This document shows positions 430-27,099 of a stretch of DNA of 64,000 bases, in pieces; positions within the stretch are counted from its first letter, which is position 1, and the number at the start of each line of letters is the position of its first letter. The translations under genes and the position numbers were made by a program. The DNA is from Podarcis erhardii (taxonomy: Eukaryota). The notes beneath the pieces were generated by a model. The model had not been told where the DNA came from and did no database searches. It saw only the letters and a program-made list of their open reading frames with translations. The stretch lies in NCBI GenBank assembly GCA_964252035.1, contig OZ176204.1; one strand, given 5' to 3'.

Positions 430-12259
<11,830 letters not shown>

Positions 12260-15900: not shown

Positions 15901-18900
15901 TTTAAGACTATGGATGTCACGTAGCACTAGAAAGGTGAAAAATTGATTCTGCACACATAACCACTTCTTTTGTGTCAGTGCTGCCTTTGAAAGCACCCTG
16001 TTCTGAGCCAGTTTATGAAATCCACAAATACATCGCTGTAATAGTGTTCTGATGCAACGCTCAGTAGTCTTTTCAGATTACAGCTTGAACTCACCCATGG
16101 AAAGTGTTCAAACTTTGTTATGTAGAAATAGTCCTTGTGGTCTTTCATGCTTGCTTCCTTAAGCAGCCAGGGCAATTTTAGCTTTCCTGAATTTCATCTC
16201 AAATTATCTTTTACATTTGCCCAATATCCTCCAGCTGCTATACTACTTAAAATTCCAAGAACCAGATTACAGCAATAGCTTTTGGGGGCCAACCAAATGT
16301 TACTAAATAGTGAGAAAGTTTTTGAGTTCTCCAGAACTTGCATCAGGCAAAATGGTAAGCAATACAAGGGGAAGGGGAGAGAGAAAAAATGTTGACACCA
16401 ATAAATGGTCTTTAGATGGAACGTTGCCGGCAGTATTGAACATAGTGAAGCTCTGTTAGTTGCATTGCTGAATTTAAGTTGTATCTGCTGCTGCAAAGGA
16501 GAAACATAAGACTGCTGATCCTTCCTTTTTTAGAAATACAAAATCCGGTTGTTGCCCAGATCTGTCTTCACCCTTAGGTGAAAGACACCTTGGTAAATGG
16601 AAAAAGGAACACTGAAAATTAGACAGCACTTACATTAACAATTCTGGAGCCTAATCTTAAGTGGTGGGCCAATATAACTACCTTTATTTGTTGTGTATAT
16701 TGTTTCAGTGCTGTAGCCTGGCATGATGTGGCTTTTGGTGGGGAAAGATACAGGGAATAGCCTCATCCAATCCCCCCCCCCATATTTGCAGGGTGAACTG
16801 AGTGTGGTTTTGGGATCCCACATGAGATTTCTCCCCTTTTCACATGGAGCGTTATCAGTAACACTTAATGTTCAGCCTTGCCTTTAATGCAGTGAATTAG
16901 CCTTTAACAATTTTGTCAACCTAAAAATTGAAATGGAATCTGATTCTTTCATGGGCCCTCTGGAATAAAAGCAGGAATAAATATCAGGAACTATCTTAAG
17001 GTATAGTGTAGGCCTGAAGCTTGGTTGACTTTTCACAGTGATCTAAGTTAGCTGTGACTATGCGGGACTGAAACATAAGGGTCCCACAAAGTATATGAAG
17101 TTTAGAAGAAAAACAGAGCGAAGATATTGTATACATGCATCTGAGATTTAATGCGATAATATCTCTCTTGTAAAATATGTCCTGCAGTTTAGCATCTTTG
17201 ATGCACAAGTGCATGATCTTTGTTGCATTTTCTTCTATAACGTAGCATTGTTTGCTGCCATGTTTCAATCTTGTACAGTCATACCTCGGGTTGAAGTAGC
17301 TTCGGGTTGAGCTTTTTTGGGTTGCGCTCCATGGCAACCTGGAAGTAATGGAACGCGTTACTTCCGGGTTTCGCCGCTCCAGAACGGATCCCGTTTGCAT
17401 CCAGAGGTACCACTGTATAGATTTTCTTCAGAGTAAATGCCATGAAAATCAACTAGTAAGCCAACGAAACATTTAGGGCTTAATGGACTTTTCCTCTCTT
17501 TAGGCCAAATCTGGTTATACCAATCTTACAGGAGTTGATTATTCTTTGCCTGCAGTGCAGCTTTCAAAAAGCATAATGGAAAAAGAAGGGTTGCCTCACA
17601 TTAAGTTGCAGGTAAGTCTTCATGGGTGCAAAATGATAAGAGTATGGGGATAGGAGGGCTTTTCCTATAAAAAAGGCTAAAAATTTGGAATAACTTAGCT
17701 TAGGAAAAAATAACTGAGGGATGGACATTTATAAAATTACGCATGTTGCAGTGAGAGCATAGATAGAATTTTTCTTCCTCTGTCATAAAGCAAAAGCCTG
17801 AGCCCCACCCCCCTTTTGGAAGTTTCAAAAGTTTCCTTGTGTGCTTCTTTACACAAGATGTTGTGATGGGCACTAATTTAAATGGCCTTAATATGGGCTT
17901 AAACACATTTACTGAGGGAAGGTCTATCGTTGGGTGCTGGTCATGAAAACTAAATGGGATTTCCAAAGCCCGTCTTAAACTGAATACCAAACACTGAAAT
18001 TGGGGCAAGTGTCAGGTGAGGCTTTTTGTTTTCACACTTACCTAGAAGTTTCATTGAACATAGCGGGACTTTCTTTTGAATAGGTTTGTACTGTGTATGA
18101 CCCTGGACCAATTACTCCCATATATGGAGATTGCCTCATCTCTTCTAAACTAAAAAGTTGTATGAAATGTTTTTTGGCAGTACACGGAATACATTGCCTA
18201 CCAGGTTTTGTTTACACAATCAAGATTCAGAGCTTATTCTTTCAGGGTTGTTGTCCTGTGACCTCAGTCTCCCATGTTTGGGAATAAGATCTAGATGTCT
18301 CCATCACATTGTATTGCTGATTTTATGCTGCCTTACGTTGATTTTATGTTTTCTTTTTTTAATTAGTCTGTATTTTACTGTTCTTACGAGAAGTGTTTTG
18401 TAAACTGCCCTGTAGATTTTGTTGATGAATGATGCAGCAATATCTAAACAAGCAAATAAATAAAATATCCCTGAATGCCTGGTTTAGGAGTGTTCTGCAC
18501 TTCTTTTCTTTCTATGATCCTAGGAAGGCATAGGCATAGTAGACCTGATAGGAAATATTAAGTAATGACTGCAGTAAGAGGTTTGACAGCTATAACTACC
18601 TTCTACAGGTAGAAGATATTTTAAATCCATCAGATGCATTATCAGACTTTCAGATTTGTATTGATAAAGGGACTTTTGACGCAATCAGTCTGAACCCAGA
18701 CAACGCAGCACAGAAGAGGAAGCAATATGTGAATTCCCTGCACAGAGTGTTGAAGCCTGGAGGCTTTTTCATCGTAACGTCTTGTAACTGGACCAAAGAG
18801 GAGCTGCTCAAAGAGTTCAAAGAAGGTGAGTGCATGCCTCTCTTTAAGGTATTTTGGATATTAAGATACAGTACTAGTGAGAGAGCTTTGTGTCCCGACT

Positions 18901-19524
18901 TAACCTGCTCAGCCTGAATCGATATAGATAGAGCAACCACTGCAAAGTTGTTCTAGGGCTGATGCTTAATATGCTCAGTTGTGTGTGAATTTCTGTGAAG
19001 ATGGTTTCTGCCTGAATACTTGGAATTCAGATGTACTTTTTGCTAACCTGAGCCATCACAGGCAGGTTGATAGAGGAGAAGGCTTTCTTGCAGATAAATT
19101 AACCAAGTTTGTATTTACAGAAGGTAAATAGACTTTGGATTTTCTGGTCCCCAAGCTGTTTTCTGATTCCAGAAGTAATTATTGACATTGGTGGTTGGGG
19201 AAAATTGGAATTACTGGCATGATAGCAGCCTGTTGTCTGTTTATAATACGAGGACTAAATCTTACCTTGGCAATATCGGTCAGCGATATAAAACATACAA
19301 GTCTATAGAAAGTGGTAGAGTCTTCTAATTTGTCTGTGCTCCATTTTGAATTAATATAAATAGCTATCGAATGAGGATATAGCTTCATTTTTTTCCTAAC
19401 AAAAGCATTTTTCTTATGGTTAGCAGGCTTTCATCTTCTGGAGGAACTGCCAACACCCACATTCTGCTTTGGAGGAAGAACTGGAAACAGTGTAACTGCC
19501 TTGGTTTTCCAACAGAAAATATAA
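12933..19524 (+). CDS. EEF1AKMT2: eEF1A lysine methyltransferase 2 (METTL10), complete: join(12933-12985, 14458-14523, 15090-15204, 17504-17611, 18609-18825, 19427-19524), 657 nt, 218 aa
   Basis: Translation MGAREEEFGPSALGTKEHWDAAYERELKNFKENGAPGEIWFGEESMTRLIRWIEKQKIPLDSSVLDIGTGNGVLLVELAKSGYTNLTGVDYS...DKGTFDAISLNPD...TSCNWTKEELLKEFKEGFHLLEELPTPTFCFGGRTGNSVTALVFQQKI. Shows SAM motif I (VLDIGTGNG) and the DKGTFDAI post-II motif; the frame is intact across all junctions. Confidence 0.96.
14458..14523 (+). CDS. EEF1AKMT2: EEF1AKMT2 exon 2 (66 nt), ends at a GC donor
   Basis: ccctgtag|T TGG GAT GCA GCA TAT GAA CGT GAA...GAG ATC TG|gcaagt. Confidence 0.92.
15090..15204 (+). CDS. EEF1AKMT2: EEF1AKMT2 exon 3 (115 nt)
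   Basis: gattag|G TTT GGT GAA GAA...GTT GAA TTG|gttggt; contains SAM motif I. Confidence 0.95.
17276..17415. mobile_element. Tigger/pogo-like MITE (CAGTGGTACCTC TIR family), 140 bp
   Basis: TA|CAGTCATACCTCGG ... AGAGGTACCACTG|TA. Confidence 0.85.
17504..17611 (+). CDS. EEF1AKMT2: EEF1AKMT2 exon 4 (108 nt)
   Basis: ctctttag|GCC AAA TCT GGT TAT...AAG TTG CAG|gtaagt; encodes TGVDYS. Confidence 0.95.
18609..18825 (+). CDS. EEF1AKMT2: EEF1AKMT2 exon 5 (217 nt)
   Basis: ttctacag|GTA GAA GAT ATT...TTC AAA GAA G|gtgagt; encodes DKGTFDAISL and TSCNWT. Confidence 0.96.
19427..19524 (+). CDS. EEF1AKMT2: EEF1AKMT2 last coding exon (stop TAA 19522-19524)
   Basis: tagcag|GC TTT CAT CTT CTG GAG GAA CTG CCA ACA CCC...CAG AAA ATA TAA. 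Confidence 0.94.
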
Positions 19525-19744
19525 AGTTTTCTTTTTAGGTGAACTTTGGATAAGGACTTCATTCTAAATTTCACTGACATTTTGTATAAAAAAATACAGG
19601 TTTCAGAAACAGCTTTCTCTTAACTACTCCTTATTGCTGTATGTCATTATATCAGCATTTTATACTACCTCAAATAGTGCTGGCGCAAATTAGGAACAGC
19701 TACCAATATTACTGATGATGAGACCATACCCATAAAGGCAATTT

Positions 19745-19750
19745 AATAAA
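19745..19750 (+). terminator. Probable polyadenylation signal of EEF1AKMT2
   Basis: First AATAAA after the stop codon, about 220 nt downstream. Confidence 0.55.
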
Positions 19751-21492
19751 CTGTCCGGCAGAGTCAATTGCAATATGTGCAAAAAGTGAGGTGGGGGAGG
19801 GAGGACACTTTGCTGAAGTTTGTAAGTCTCCTGTCCAGGTGCTTATAAATAAGAACGAGGAACATCACATTTCCTGGGGGGAATTTTTGAGTGACAGGAC
19901 TCCACCACGCTTCCCCATATTGTCGGGGGAATATGGCCACAAATTGCAGCTGTGAACGGATTCATCCTACCCATACACTATTTAATTAAAGCATTTTAAT
20001 TCTGCTTTACAGCTGGAAAAGTTATGACAGCAGTTTACAATCTGAAAGACACAGCATAAAAGGGAGGAAAAAAGAAAGGGAGGGGGGAGAAGCAGTATAA
20101 GTCTGCTTCCAGATGGGTGGTTCCTAGTGCAACTCAATCACTTCTCTTCCTTCGAAAGCTATAAGCAGATTGTAGCTGGCTTTCCATACTGTTAGAAGTA
20201 CTGTCCTTTCCCTATCCTTCTGTGTTCTGTCCACCCTAGTGATTGTGCCATGGCTGCTTTGAGTGGGGCCATTTGAGGCTCAACACACATTCACAATGCA
20301 TGTTGTGGTGGGTGCCATTTTGTGATCCCATTTATAATTATTAATCAATCTTCAAATTAGCATTGAAACACTTTTCTATAATTATTTCTGAATAGAAGAC
20401 TTATACCACCATAATGTTACCGCTTGTAATAATGGTGTTACAGTGCTGCAATGCCACAAATACAATAATGGTAATTTTAAAAGAGTTTTAAAAATCATTA
20501 TGATGTCCCAGCCAATTTTGCAACTGAAACGGTTTTGTAAAACAGTTTTATGGTGGGACAGTGCAATATATTTCAAAAATTATAGCTGGAAATTATTTTA
20601 GTGCTAATTATAGATGAAAATCAATGGGATTGTAAAGCAGCACCCATTGTAAAGACTTTGCTGAAAGTGAGCTGAGCTGCCATAAGGTTCACTTGAACAA
20701 TTAATCACTGCTGTCGAAACATAATCTTTTGAAAAGATAGAAGGGTATTGCTAAAGTCACCTATACCTGTGGGCGCTGCACTTTTCTATTTTTCTGAAAA
20801 ACGTTGGACTTTCTGTGGTCTGAGAAAAGATTGAAGAACAACAAAGAAAATACAGGTTGACAGTGTTGGGATGTCTGTGCCATGCAGATGCACGGTCAAA
20901 AAAACATGGATCAGACACAGCATTTCCCACATTTAGTATCTTCAGGCACCAGTTATTAAAGTTAAAATAGTTAGACCATTGTTTCCCCCCTGGCTTCACA
21001 AAGTCTTCTTTTTAATCCCAAGTCTTCGCCTGCAAACATCAGATACCCATCCAATTAGATATAAGGGTGCTCCTATTGCCATAAATGGCCATTTCATGTG
21101 CGTTTCACTGCTATCCTGGAATGCAAAGGATGCATTACTGAGGGAAGAGTGCACACTGCACAGAGGAGCTTCAATACTGAAATGGAATCACGACAGAACT
21201 CCAGTTTGTGTTGGACCTAAATAGCGTGGACCCTGTTTATGTTAGAAGAATCTAAAACCGAGAATTCATACGCTTCTTTCATTGCTTATTTCTCAGAGGT
21301 TTTTTGCTGATAACTCCTGGTATTCAGAATACTCTTCCAGATCATTTACCCTGTTGTCTGATTTCAAGCCAAAAGGGTGTTAAAGAAGATGAGGATGAAT
21401 GGCTGGTAATTCCCCCAAATCATCCAAGGTGAGATTACACCTCCAGACTGGAAAGGAAACTTGAGTGCTGGCCCAAGTGCTTGCTAGTTTTA

Positions 21493-23359
21493 TTTATTTT
21501 TATTTTTTTTATAAATTTTTATTGGGTTTTTAAATTTTTTAACAAACAAACAAACATATAAAGACAAAACAAAACATGCATAACTTCATCACCTTACTTT
21601 CATTACCTTCTTTCATTGACTTCCCCGCACCCTCCCTCCCACATTCCAATTTCGTTGATTATCTCAGCAAGTTATTTCTCTCGTCCCTTAAATATTTCTT
21701 ATCTTTTCTTAAAGTTTATCTCATACACTTAACCCAGTTTAATTTATCCAACTTTACACAATTAGTCATTTCTCTAAGGGCGGCCTAAGTTTTCTCCCAT
21801 AAATTTCTCCCTTCTCATATTACACCAAGAATCATAATATAGCGATTCTAAATCTCAGATTTCAACTATTCTACTCTCCCCTCCCTCCCTGCCCCGGTTC
21901 TGTCCCTTCCCAAACCGATGTCCCAATAAGTTGGCTGTTTTAGCCCGGGTTTCTCACATCAGAGGCTCTTAAGCCCCAGTTAGTCTCTCTCCACCAGTTT
22001 TGTTGGTAGTCCGTTTTGTTGGCTCTCTCTTTTTGAAGAGGTTCTGTCACCAGCCCCTCATGTTTTTCTCCTTCCAAATCAGTCAATGTCAGTTTCTGCT
22101 CAGGACCGCTCAATCTCTCATACTCCAACCAGATGAAGAAGTCCCAATCATGCTTGTTTGCTCTTATATAGTCCAGTATTCCTGTTATTTCAGGGACTTC
22201 TTCCTTTCTCTCTCTCTCCTTTTGCAGATTTGCGATCCACTTGTCATTTCCTTTGTTTCCTTTGTTTCCAAAGGTTGCCGGCTTTTGGTTGATTTTTTCC
22301 ACCTGAAAATCCTCTCCTTCTTCCTCTTTCTTTTCCCCCAGTTCCAAAGTTATCTCATCCTCTGCAGCTGCAGAATTTTTTTCCATCAGCTTTGTATCAT
22401 TGGCAGAGATGCCCAGTTCCAGACCAAAAGTCTCCAGTTGTTTACTCATTGTAGTACTTTGCTCTTGTAAAGTTCCCACGAGAAAAAACATCCTTTGAAT
22501 CTCTGCCCACAGTTTCTCTTCTGCAGCCATTGCAATATCTTTAGTTCCCTCCAGGGGGGTTTCCATCATGATCCTATTCCAACAATCCGTTACTGTTGTT
22601 CCCTGCTACTTTGTTGTTCCCAATCACTTTGTTTCTAAAAGTTCAGTTATAAATGTAGCTCTTTTAACCCAAAAGGGGACTAGCAACACAGTTCCAAATC
22701 TTTTCCACTCGTTTGACAGCTCCTTTGACAGCTGTCAAACTCTTTGTTCTTTTTCCTCGGGCTCACACGCAGGGCGCTCCCGGGTCCAAGGGGGGGGGGG
22801 ATTACCAAAAAAGAAAAGCTTCCGAAATTCTACTCTTTTCCACTCCAGCACAAAAACTTATAATCCAATTCATGAGAGTGTCTATTTAAACACCAAAGTC
22901 TTTTCCGCCTTAGTGCTCCTCTCCTTGCTTTGAATCTTTCTGTGGGGGGGGGAGTGCAGACTTCCTTTTAACACCCCCCCGGTCGTACTCAATTTTAGGT
23001 ATAGAAATTTTAGTGCCAAAATTTCCTTCTACTCACGGGTTATTTGTTTCAGTCCGAATTTCAGGAAGAAAGATAGCGCTCTCCGGTCATGGCTCGCGGC
23101 TTCACTCCGCCAAGGCAGCGATCGACTCTCAGCGCCACGCCACTCTCCGGTCCACTCCGTAGCCTTTAAAAAGGCTCTTCGCGGGTCGGGGAGGGCGCTT
23201 AAGGTGCCCACCGAGTCTCCATGTCCGCAGGCTTCAGCGCCTGCGGTTTCTAAGGGTCCCCGTGTCGCCGGCACGGCAAGACCCGTCCTTGGCGGAGCCG
23301 ACTCCCTCCGGAGCTCAGAGGGAATCCGCCATTACCCCGTTCGCGCTATCCCGGAAGTC
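21493..23359 (-). mobile_element. Full-length non-autonomous L1-type (HAL1-like) retroposon, 1867 bp
   Basis: 16-17 bp TSD AGTGCTTGCTAGTTTT(A) at 21476-21492 and 23360-23376; TT/AAAA target site; CpG-rich 5' end starting GACTTCCGG; single 209-aa ORF; AATAAA (21518-21523, minus strand) followed by an A-rich tail. Confidence 0.85.
21940..22569 (-). CDS. Retroposon-encoded 209-aa Glu/Lys-rich ORF (ORF1-like position, function unknown)
   Basis: ATG-to-TAA uninterrupted ORF in the sense orientation of the TSD-flanked element; longest ORF in the window; no RT or EN motifs. Confidence 0.5.
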   Translation of the reverse strand: MMETPLEGTKDIAMAAEEKLWAEIQRMFFLVGTLQEQSTTMSKQLETFGLELGISANDTKLMEKNSAAAEDEITLELGEKKEEEGEDFQVEKINQKPATFGNKGNKGNDKWIANLQKERERKEEVPEITGILDYIRANKHDWDFFIWLEYERLSGPEQKLTLTDLEGEKHEGLVTEPLQKERANKTDYQQNWWRETNWGLRASDVRNPG

Positions 23360-23525
23360 AGTGCTTGCTAGTTTTAAACCTGATATAACCAAAGGACGGT
23401 CATGCAAGAATAAAATACCTGAACATTTGCAACAGGACAGGCAACTGTCCTTTTCAATAAGTGGGTATTGAGAATTGATGAGTAGCACTAGCCTCTCTGC
23501 ATTTGATTAAAGTAGCCCATGATGA

Positions 23526-23892
23526 AAGGGACGCGGGTGGCGCTGTGGTCTAAGCCACTGAGCCTCTTGGGCTTGCCGATCAGAAGGTCGGCGGTTCGAA
23601 TCCCTGCGACGGGGTGAGCTGCTGTTGCTCGGTCCCAGCTCCTGTCAACCTAGCAGTCTGAAAGCACGTCAAAGTGCATGTAGATAAATAGGTACCGTTC
23701 TGGCGGGAAGGTAAACAGCACTTCCGTGCGCTGCTCTGGTTTCGCCAGAAGCGGCTTAGTCATGCTGGCCACATGACCCAGAAAAACTGTCCGTGGACGA
23801 ACGTCGGCTCCCTCGGCTAGTAAAGCGAGATGAGTGCCGCAACCCCAGAGTTGTTCACGACTGGACTTAACTGTCAGGGGTCCTTGACCTTT
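23526..23892 (+). mobile_element. Full-length Sauria SINE
   Basis: Box A TGGCGCTGTGG (23538-23548), box B GGTTCGAATCC (23593-23603), acctt-type tail; 13-bp TSD TAGCCCATGATGA (23513-23525, 23893-23905). Confidence 0.92.
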
Positions 23893-25439
23893 TAGCCCAT
23901 GATGATCGCCTAGGTAGGAGTTTGATTAAAAGAACGACGAGACAAAAGCTTTGGATGCCCAGGAATGGACAAAACCACTGAGGAACTAATCAAGATTTAT
24001 GTGATTTATGCCTTCTGTGGAAATATCTCAGAAGTCTTTCATCATTCTGTTATGTCCAACAGAGGGCATGCAAGGCCAGCATCAGTGAGGCTGAACCAGG
24101 CTCATTGTCATGGTGTGATATCATCAGCTCCCATTGTCCTTCCCACCCCTACCTTCTACTACGGCTTTTGTGAGCAGCAGGGCTGCAGATGTGGTGACCC
24201 ATTGCTCCACTAAGCCCCACCAGAGAAGAACAGAGTTTGGGTTGCACCCTAACTAAGCAACAGGTTAACAAATGGCAAGATAGTATTCCCACTGACTAAC
24301 AATAAAATTAAGGGCAATACTCCCATTTACTAAATACTGTACTTTTGCTGGATGTTTCGACTTCATTTAAAAACTTGAACTGATGAGGCAAAGAGTCATA
24401 CTTAGAAGTCTCATTGAGTCCAATGGAGATTATTCCCAGTGGGTATAGGATTGCAGCATGAGGCTGCAATCTAATTATAGTTATTTAGGACTAAGTCTAC
24501 TTGAATTTAGTGGCACTTCCAAGTTAACATGCACAGCAGGATAGGGTTACAGGACTAATTGATCAGGAAAATGGCACAGAAAACGCGTGATTGCCCTACC
24601 TAATCACAACTTTCAGATAAACAACCCTGAGCAGAAGAATGGAAGATGGCATAAGAGCAGCAATGGAAGGAAGGAAAACAAGTGGCTTCTAGGGCTTTTC
24701 TGTTGTACCAGAAGTTTGTTAGGGGATCAGCATATGCCAGTAGGAGTCACTCTTGGCTTCTTAATAGATTTTAAAATAAATTAATGCAAGGCATTCTCAC
24801 AACCAAATATACCAATTATTTATTGTAGGTATCAATGTCAATAAAAATGCAGGTGGCGTGCTTACCCTTACATTATTTCTGTTTAACATATTTTCTTGTT
24901 ACAATATAATTAATTCAAATACCATGAGTCTCCTCAAGTTTGAAAGAACACAAATCTGAAGTTAGTATAGCCAAATCAATTTGTTGGGCTAAAATTGAAT
25001 TATATTGTAAGCATGAGAACTACAGCTAATTTTTATATTTTAGTGGTACACAGTTGATGTATTTAGATATAATTGTCACAAGCAAATTAAACCATCACAA
25101 TTAAAAAATGCACCCAACAACAATAGCATACAAGACAAATATGGTTATAACCCAACCTTCTATCAATTCCTTCATTACAGTATTCACATGTGCTACATTT
25201 GTGTACATATAAACTGATGGAACTCAGTAACTCAGAAGGAGAAGTGGAAATTGGAATTTTGCACTCACAGATCACACAAAAGTACCTCAAGCAGCATGTC
25301 GTTGAGCTCTGCTTCATATCGAGTGATACCAGAATTTAAATTTGCCTATTATAAAATGATCCCAAACTAACTACTTGTCTGTGGATTGCATATTCATAAC
25401 TACCAAGCTACTGTTATTATATATAGGCCTGGAATATAT

Positions 25440-25610
25440 CACACTTTAATTTAGCACAGCTATTTAATCTCATTTGTCCTCACAATAACCTTAACAGTCC
25501 CATTGTTATTACCATTTTAGAAGCTGAGGAAAAATCTGTCTATCCCAAGCCCATGACTGATCAAGGATCTGAACACAGACTTGCTGTGTCTAATTTCTGT
25601 ATTTCTGCCC
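25440..25610 (-). mobile_element. MIR-like SINE remnant
   Basis: aatctcatttgtcctcacaataacc...ccattttagaagctgaggaaa resembles the MIR core. Confidence 0.55.
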
Positions 25611-27099
25611 TACACTTTTAGTTCTAGATTTATTTTATTCTATTTTACATGGAATAAAAGTAGCTCTGAGGTCAAAGCAGTGTTTTAAGCTATAATCATA
25701 TGCACGCTTACAGTACAGGCCCATACATGCCTACTGAGAAGTTAAGTCCTATTGAATTCAATGGAACTTGTACACGTGTATAGGATTGCAGCCTCGCCCT
25801 GGGAGTAAACTTCATTGGATATGGTGGACCTTATTGCCCAGTAAATATGTATAGAATGGAGCTGAACAAATTAGCCACCACACCTTTAGCAAAAAGCAAA
25901 TAGAACTGTAGAGAATTCAGTAAAATTCTATTTAGGGTCATATTTATTCCATCTGATTGCCTGACCACCTAAGGCAGGGCTGGACTTATCAACAGGCAGA
26001 TTGGGGTGGCCACCTCAAGCTGCAGATCCTGGGGTATGGGGATAGTCACCCAGCTCTGTTGGAGGACAACTGTGTGTCATGAGACCTGTTCTGAACCAAA
26101 CCTTGCCTGGTACTCTCAGGAGCGGTGGACGATGTGTGTCCAGGAGGGGGCACCATCTTATATGGCTCAGGCAGCAAAAAAAAAAAAAAAAAAAAAAGAG
26201 GGGGGGGGGCCTGGCCTTGGCCTTTCTTCTAGGCAGCTCCTTGTTATGGAGCTCCCTCCAAAGGAAGATTTGGCTGGCCTCTAGCCTCCTTGGCAAAAAT
26301 GTATGCTTTTCTGGAGAGTTTGCTCTGTGCTGCTTTCTGCTTTTTATTTTCAAAACTTTTATGGCGGTCTATGTGTTTTTATTATGTCTATGGTGGGATT
26401 ATTAAAAACACCAACAACAAAACCAACTAGCCAAGGTACTCTGTGTCTCTTTCCATTTTGCCCCTCCAGTGTTATAAATTAGATACGTTTTGAGAACTGC
26501 TTTCAAATGGCAAAAATAATAATAGCATTTTCCATTGAAAGAGCGGGGAGCTGGGTACAATCAGGACTGATTCAGCTGCCCAAAAATAATAGTCAGTTAC
26601 ATGCAATGCTATGGGTGGGGGTTTTTTTTGGGGTGGTGGGGGATTTTGCCCCAGCATCCCTGTAAGGAACTGTAGACATCACGCCTCTTAGTTACTCTGA
26701 AGCCGCAAGAAGTTATTGGGGGCAACAAGAAAACAGACCCTGCCCTTTCTTCCAAATCCAGACTGACCACTAACCACTACTCTAGGTATTAGTGCTTAGT
26801 TCCCAAGGGTGCGACCCTAACCTCACTTACCTGGGAATAAGCCTCATTGCACTCTGCGGGGCTGACCTCTCAGCAGACGCATTTAGGATTGCGCGGTCAG
26901 ATGTGAAAATCCCAGGGTTTCCAAACCTGTCCAGGAGCCCCTGCCTAACCTTTGACCTGGAAGGCCTTCCCTTCATCCCGGATGTGCTCAGGAGGGATGC
27001 ATATGTGCATGTTTGCATGCAGCGGTGCGAGAAAGGAGGAGAAGCAGCCCCTGGCCATTCCCAAATGCGCTCTCCCTGCTGTTTCTCGTCCCCGGGTTG

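Follow-up and report, generated by a model that had tools for sequence, protein, structure and literature searches.

What mobilised a 1.9-kb insert that lacks enzyme genes, and what part might be played by the one protein that it does encode? These questions are raised by a locus of the lizard Podarcis erhardii. The window analysed is a stretch of 64,000 nucleotides (nt) from contig OZ176204.1 (GenBank assembly GCA_964252035.1), and the insert is an 1867-bp element on its minus strand (21493-23359). It comprises a 790-nt 5' untranslated region (UTR), an open reading frame (ORF) of 209 amino acids (aa) and a 447-nt 3' UTR. In our assessment the insert is very probably a non-autonomous retroposon that depends on lizard L1, belongs to a lineage-specific family of many copies and was inserted very recently and at full length.

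Target site and empty allele

The insert is bounded by a perfect 17-nt direct repeat, AGTGCTTGCTAGTTTTA on the plus strand, at 21476-21492 and 23360-23376 (100% identity by the repeat finder). The target duplication is 16 or 17 nt long, as the outermost base could equally belong to the A/T-ending tail. In the orientation of the element the target reads GGTT(T)/AAAACTAGCAAGCACT; thus, the strand that primed reverse transcription was nicked at TTTT/A, the preference of the L1 endonuclease. An initial annotation, made from the sequence without database searches, had described a minus-strand insert of this length with a perfect duplication at an L1-type site, and both the sequence and the repeat finder agree. 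The layout that it gave (lengths of the 5' UTR, ORF and 3' region, the G-rich tracts, the AATAAA signal and the A-rich tail) was also recovered.

We aligned Logan contigs of four public runs (X1, X4, X5 and X15) to positions 20600-24300 and identified the empty site. In a 4270-nt contig of run X1, contig positions 3198-4073 correspond to 20600-21475 and positions 4074-4270 to 23360-23556, so that the flanks are contiguous and a single copy of the duplication is present. The same uninterrupted 21475/23360 join occurs in runs X5 and X15, which are from other coded organisms and have flanks that are 3-4% different. The site was not resolved in the contigs of run X4. About 3 differences in 1500 bases (0.2%) separate the X1 flanks from the window, a within-species level. 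Because an empty site is found in so similar a background, the insertion is very young or polymorphic. The view of the initial annotation that this is a young, complete copy with an intact promoter end is thus supported by the empty-site contigs, with their single duplication copy, and by the L1-type 5' terminus described below. The copy is usable as a ready presence/absence marker.

An L1-type 5' end in a multi-copy family

The clade-1 L1 families of the anole begin with a conserved sequence in common, GACTTCCGGTGN8ATGGCG (Boissinot and Sookdeo 2016, PMC5381506). Their 5' UTRs measure 1268 +/- 198 nt (minimum 792) and contain CpG islands, and their 3' UTRs measure 345 +/- 118 nt, with a canonical AATAAA and an A tail (PMC5381506). 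The first nine bases of the insert, whose start is fixed independently by the target duplication, are GACTTCCGG. With both strands of the window counted, this sequence occurs once, exactly at the first base of the insert, and 0.08 occurrences are expected. Together with ATGGCG at bases 28-33, it matches the published extremity in a comparison made at the level of motifs. The lengths of the two UTRs of the element fit the published clade-1 ranges, and its sense strand is A-rich.

The initial annotation called the 5' UTR CpG-rich. This holds for the first 300 nt, in which the CpG observed/expected ratio is about 1.05 and GC content is 62-66%, and not for the remainder, where the ratio is 0.45-0.60. 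These 300 nt also fold more strongly than shuffled sequence (z = -4.4), and no excess RNA folding was detected in the 3' region (z = +1.1). Over the first ~280 nt (23080-23359, minus strand), summed contig depth in three runs is 10-100 times that of the ORF. The CpG-rich front end therefore seems to be common to a much larger population of repeats, presumably L1s and other L1 derivatives.

With Pfam, neither the ORF nor ten further sense-frame pieces yielded a domain of any kind, reverse transcriptase and endonuclease included, in line with the absence of enzyme genes reported by the initial annotation. The same annotation tentatively placed a relic of the ORF2 C-terminus at 21670-21776, which we do not retain as Pfam gave no match there. 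Within the window, BLASTN of the element returned neither a second copy nor a related L1, and regular-expression scans for ORF1 RNA recognition motif (RRM) and ORF2 endonuclease and reverse transcriptase motifs detected no relic of a long interspersed element. An autonomous L1 was rejected as a candidate, given the lack of ORF2 endonuclease and reverse transcriptase domains in Pfam and a length of 1867 bp that is too short. A short interspersed element (SINE), which would be non-coding, a few hundred bp long and headed by a Pol III promoter region from a small RNA, was rejected as well: there is no Rfam match over 19000-26000, a range that spans the whole element, and the insert is 1.87 kb long, starts with a CpG island and encodes a conserved ORF.

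Relatives of the ORF were identified in Logan assemblies as three clusters. One encodes proteins of 208 aa at 70% identity (10 distinct intact variants), another of 201 aa at 54% identity (1 distinct intact variant), and the last of 201 aa at 36-39% identity (7 distinct intact variants). An exhaustive profile search of 1.84 billion representative proteins gave nine matches, all of 129-215 aa, and a word-index search with the widened family alignment added two members and otherwise returned only the family. Overall, the protein family spans 129-215 aa and 25-70% identity. Metagenome scans with the element's 5'-terminal 22-mer and with the family alignment found nothing.

Contig depth points the same way. 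Stretches of 273, 322 and 163 nt of the element are matched without a difference by contigs of run X1 at depths of 208-222, compared with 19-20 for the single-copy flanks. In three runs, from as many coded organisms, element-derived contigs exceed the flanks in depth at least 10-fold; depth is here a rough proxy and not a copy number. Other X1 contigs, 89-92% identical to the element (21979-22278 and 22575-22756), have depths similar to those of the identical contigs, so at least two subfamilies coexist in the genome behind that run. The element is a member of a clearly multi-copy family with at least two subfamilies. Related copies, which the initial annotation had expected to find, do exist, both as clusters of ORF variants and as deep element-derived contigs.

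The encoded protein and the competing explanations

The ORF protein is acidic (isoelectric point 4.7, 15% Glu). When the element was shuffled 1000 times with its dinucleotides preserved, 4 of the shuffles contained an ORF of 209 aa or longer. Two modules are conserved across the family. One is a heptad pattern at residues 20-52, where the hydrophobic fraction at a/d positions is 0.73 compared with 0.20 elsewhere, and family-invariant residues occupy a/d positions of the N-terminal helix. This helix (residues ~10-50, pLDDT 81-89) is the only confident part of the AlphaFold model, in which pLDDT falls below 50 from residue 72 onward. The other module is the last ~25 residues, ending in [RK]DL[RK]ASD[VL]R[NSD]PG-stop, with ASDVRNPG-stop in this copy. 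The middle of the protein varies in sequence and length. We considered a 2A-type peptide (D[VI]ExNPGP) at the C-terminus and rejected it, as the register is one residue off, a stop stands in place of the Pro, and the N varies to S or D. A complex prediction with three copies of residues 8-80 scored 0.02, which speaks neither for nor against oligomerisation.

Is this protein the ORF1p of a true HAL1-type element? The initial annotation proposed this by calling the insert a half-L1 with an ORF1-like protein. Some features agree with the proposal. With a 5' UTR of 792 nt, the shortest published for clade 1, ORF1 would fall at the place where this ORF begins (base 791), and the coiled coil of ORF1p, which is well conserved among lizard clade-1 families, is likewise N-terminal, as are the conserved heptads modelled here as a confident helix. 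However, heptads can appear in any helix-rich protein, and we could not detect ORF1p with Pfam, PDB, profile or fold searches. Pfam searches of 12 family members gave no Transposase_22 at E up to 10, and the ORF has no match to the RRM or C-terminal domain of ORF1p. No L1 ORF1p chain was matched among PDB sequences at E up to 10, and Foldseek gave no PDB match to the ORF model. The exhaustive profile search yielded no relative longer than 215 aa, and the word-index search gave family members alone. In a feature search of the ESM Atlas the best score was 0.78, to viral nucleoprotein clusters, which is under any useful threshold. ORF1p is, as general knowledge, a basic protein, and the lizard protein is acidic. 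Judged from sequence, the ORF protein is not a recognisable ORF1p; the half-L1 label was not upheld, and we regard a true HAL1-type element as doubtful.

Could the frame instead be without function, with the family an effectively non-coding L1 parasite? The frame would then be open through youth and a purine-rich sense strand, and its conservation would reflect constraint on RNA or DNA. This is improbable, although the shuffle result lends it something, as does the protein database, which lists open frames only, so that intact copies are over-sampled. A frameshifted relative (P0024) parallels the +1 frame of the window for ~26 codons; therefore, nucleotide conservation appears to extend ~60 nt past the stop codon and into the first G-tract (21869-21966, minus strand, judged from this relative). 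Against this, members at 25-40% identity (176-215 aa) keep homologous start and stop positions, and the invariant residues coincide with the a/d core positions of the helix; the relatives of 129 aa and 154 aa have truncated or frameshifted sequences. Given these shared boundaries, we infer that master copies would have preserved the open frame across deeply diverged subfamilies. It is scarcely credible that the insert lies outside any transposing family, whether as the processed retrocopy of a cellular transcript or as an L1 with a one-off internal deletion. A processed pseudogene would have the same layout of 5' UTR, ORF, 3' UTR, AATAAA, A tail and duplication, but the 5' end here is an L1 terminus, many distinct ORF variants of the same length fall into several diverged clusters, and element-derived contigs exceed the flanks in depth as described above. 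The 1.84 billion proteins include no host gene homologue, the matches being only short orphan ORFs. A processed pseudogene, which would be single or low in copy number and have an intron-bearing parent gene for the same protein, was accordingly set aside.

Several observations weigh against the reading of the insert as an L1-dependent retroposon of a multi-copy family. The spacing from GACTTCCGG to ATGGCG is 18 nt here and 10 nt in the anole consensus. The homology to L1 is seen in these 5'-terminal motifs; any further homology, and an L1 origin of the 3' end, would be putative. The multi-copy estimate draws in part on contig depth, with the limit given above, and the eight visible ORF variants (4 synonymous and 4 non-synonymous) are uninformative. 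Support for transcription is weak, consisting of low-depth related contigs in a run that is only guessed to be RNA.

For this L1-dependent retroposon, the outcome of mobilisation is directly visible: a 16-17-nt duplication at TTTT/A, an A-rich tail, a complete 5' end, an empty allele and no enzyme genes. Because no enzyme is encoded, the element would have to borrow that of L1. The L1 clade-1 type terminus lies inside a CpG-rich, structured 300-nt leader that presumably acts as an internal RNA polymerase II promoter. The transcript would be polyadenylated at the element's own AATAAA and its ORF translated. L1 ORF2p, probably supplied in trans, would then nick a TTTT/A site and copy the element by target-primed reverse transcription. 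The ORF protein may help the RNA to reach the L1 machinery, perhaps by coiled-coil contacts, either with L1 ORF1p or with itself as one possibility, or it may be a remnant of the ORF1 coiled coil. A more specific version is that of a distinct protein-coding L1 parasite, in which an L1 promoter and tail are combined with a conserved, acidic coiled-coil protein other than ORF1p. In this version the L1 ribonucleoprotein would be hijacked, or modulated, through the invariant C-terminal RDLRASDVRNPG-type peptide and the helix at the N-terminus, and the family would still be transposing in wall-lizard populations. We offer this tentatively and consider it rather unlikely in full.

Genomic setting and comparison with known elements

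The element is antisense to EEF1AKMT2 and lies ~1.95 kb downstream of its stop codon (19522-19524). The plus-strand exons of this gene, which the initial annotation correctly named as a flank, are at ~15.1 kb, 18.6-18.8 kb and 19.44-19.52 kb, and the last coding exon closes with that stop codon. A match to Methyltransf_31 (E = 1e-6) was obtained for the exon at 18603-18830, which also has at least 74% identity to named fragments of EEF1A lysine methyltransferase 2. The element contributes neither AATAAA nor ATTAAA on the plus strand. A contig of 2628 nt and depth 47.7 from run X15, a run only guessed to be RNA, extends from ~19.0 kb to 23520 across the empty site; past the neighbouring SINE-like repeat the depth is 4.2, i.e., the contig is 11 times deeper. 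As this contig spans ~19.0-23.52 kb without the element, the site may be within the 3' UTR of EEF1AKMT2, to which the insertion may add 1.9 kb. The SINE-like repeat itself is of very high copy and lies 150 bp from the element (23526-23892, plus strand). It has a perfect 13-nt duplication, TAGCCCATGATGA, at 23513-23525 and 23893-23905, and its summed contig depth reaches up to millions in all four runs. ARAGORN called no tRNA in it. The parts of the element are listed in Table 1.

Table 1. Positions of the retroposon and its parts in the window
Feature	Position	Strand	Basis or remark
Target-site duplication, 5' side of element	23360-23376		Identical 17-mer; sole copy kept in empty-site contigs
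Target-site duplication, 3' side of element	21476-21492		Identical 17-mer; outermost base ambiguous with tail
Complete non-autonomous retroposon copy, 1867 bp	21493-23359	-	Missing from contigs of runs X1, X5 and X15
L1-type 5' terminus: GACTTCCGG at bases 1-9, ATGGCG at bases 28-33	23327-23359	-	Match to published anole clade-1 consensus
Front of 5' UTR, similar to a CpG island and strongly folding; putative internal promoter	23060-23359	-	CpG, GC, RNA fold, contig depth
Remaining 5' UTR; four short upstream ORFs; G7, C9 and C11 runs	22570-23059	-	Sequence
209-aa ORF, acidic protein; N-terminal heptad helix and C-terminal ~25 aa conserved	21940-22569	-	Translation, family alignment, model
3' UTR; two G-tract motifs (21878-21895, 21623-21640); AATAAA (21518-21523)	21511-21939	-	Sequence
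A-rich tail, A8-T-A5-T-A3	21493-21510	-	Sequence

Non-autonomous elements must evade the preference of L1 for copying its own RNA. To our knowledge, the way in which protein-coding parasites do so is not known, even for the HAL1 elements of mammals. The family is a natural test system for this problem, as it is very young or polymorphic and combines an L1-type promoter end with a small two-module protein. Neither of the conserved modules corresponds to the part of ORF1p that binds RNA. Work on the family could reveal whether such a protein aids the parasite, inhibits L1, or both.

Several known systems share parts of this design. SVA, Alu and other L1-dependent retroposons are likewise mobilised in trans; they insert at TT/AAAA targets and show A tails and duplications of the L1 type. 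They are non-coding and have different promoters, whereas the 5' end of the lizard element is of L1 type and its ORF is conserved. The anole L1_AC clade-1 elements are alike in their 5'-terminal motif followed by ATGGCG, a long 5' UTR that contains CpG, a 3' UTR that is a few hundred nt long and ends in AATAAA and an A tail, and an A-rich sense strand. Unlike these elements, which are about 6.4 kb long, the lizard element has no ORF2 and no recognisable ORF1; its motif spacing is wider, and its G-rich 3' tracts would be exceptional in an anole L1. Fragments of human ORF1p that consist of the N-terminus plus the coiled coil act on L1 in trans and suppress it (PMC5605252). They resemble the lizard protein in being short, in having an N-terminal coiled-coil-type helix (its sole confident feature) and in belonging to an L1-type unit. 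However, they are demonstrably ORF1p and L1-suppressing, and the lizard ORF is known from sequence and a model.

The closest comparison is with HAL1, described as a non-autonomous derivative of L1 that has ORF1p as its sole product and originated repeatedly among mammals (PMC5753468). We found no description of a lizard HAL1, or of such a lizard element, in the literature searched. Both HAL1 and the lizard element are L1 derivatives without ORF2 that kept one ORF, presumably rely on L1 for mobilisation and have a lineage-specific origin (PMC5753468). The lizard element has an L1 terminal sequence (at the level of motifs), lacks ORF2, and is multi-copy with L1-type hallmarks. [quoted passage not shown] Because this defining feature is absent, we do not file the element as a member of HAL1; it works like HAL1, as an L1-dependent retroposon with an orphan ORF.

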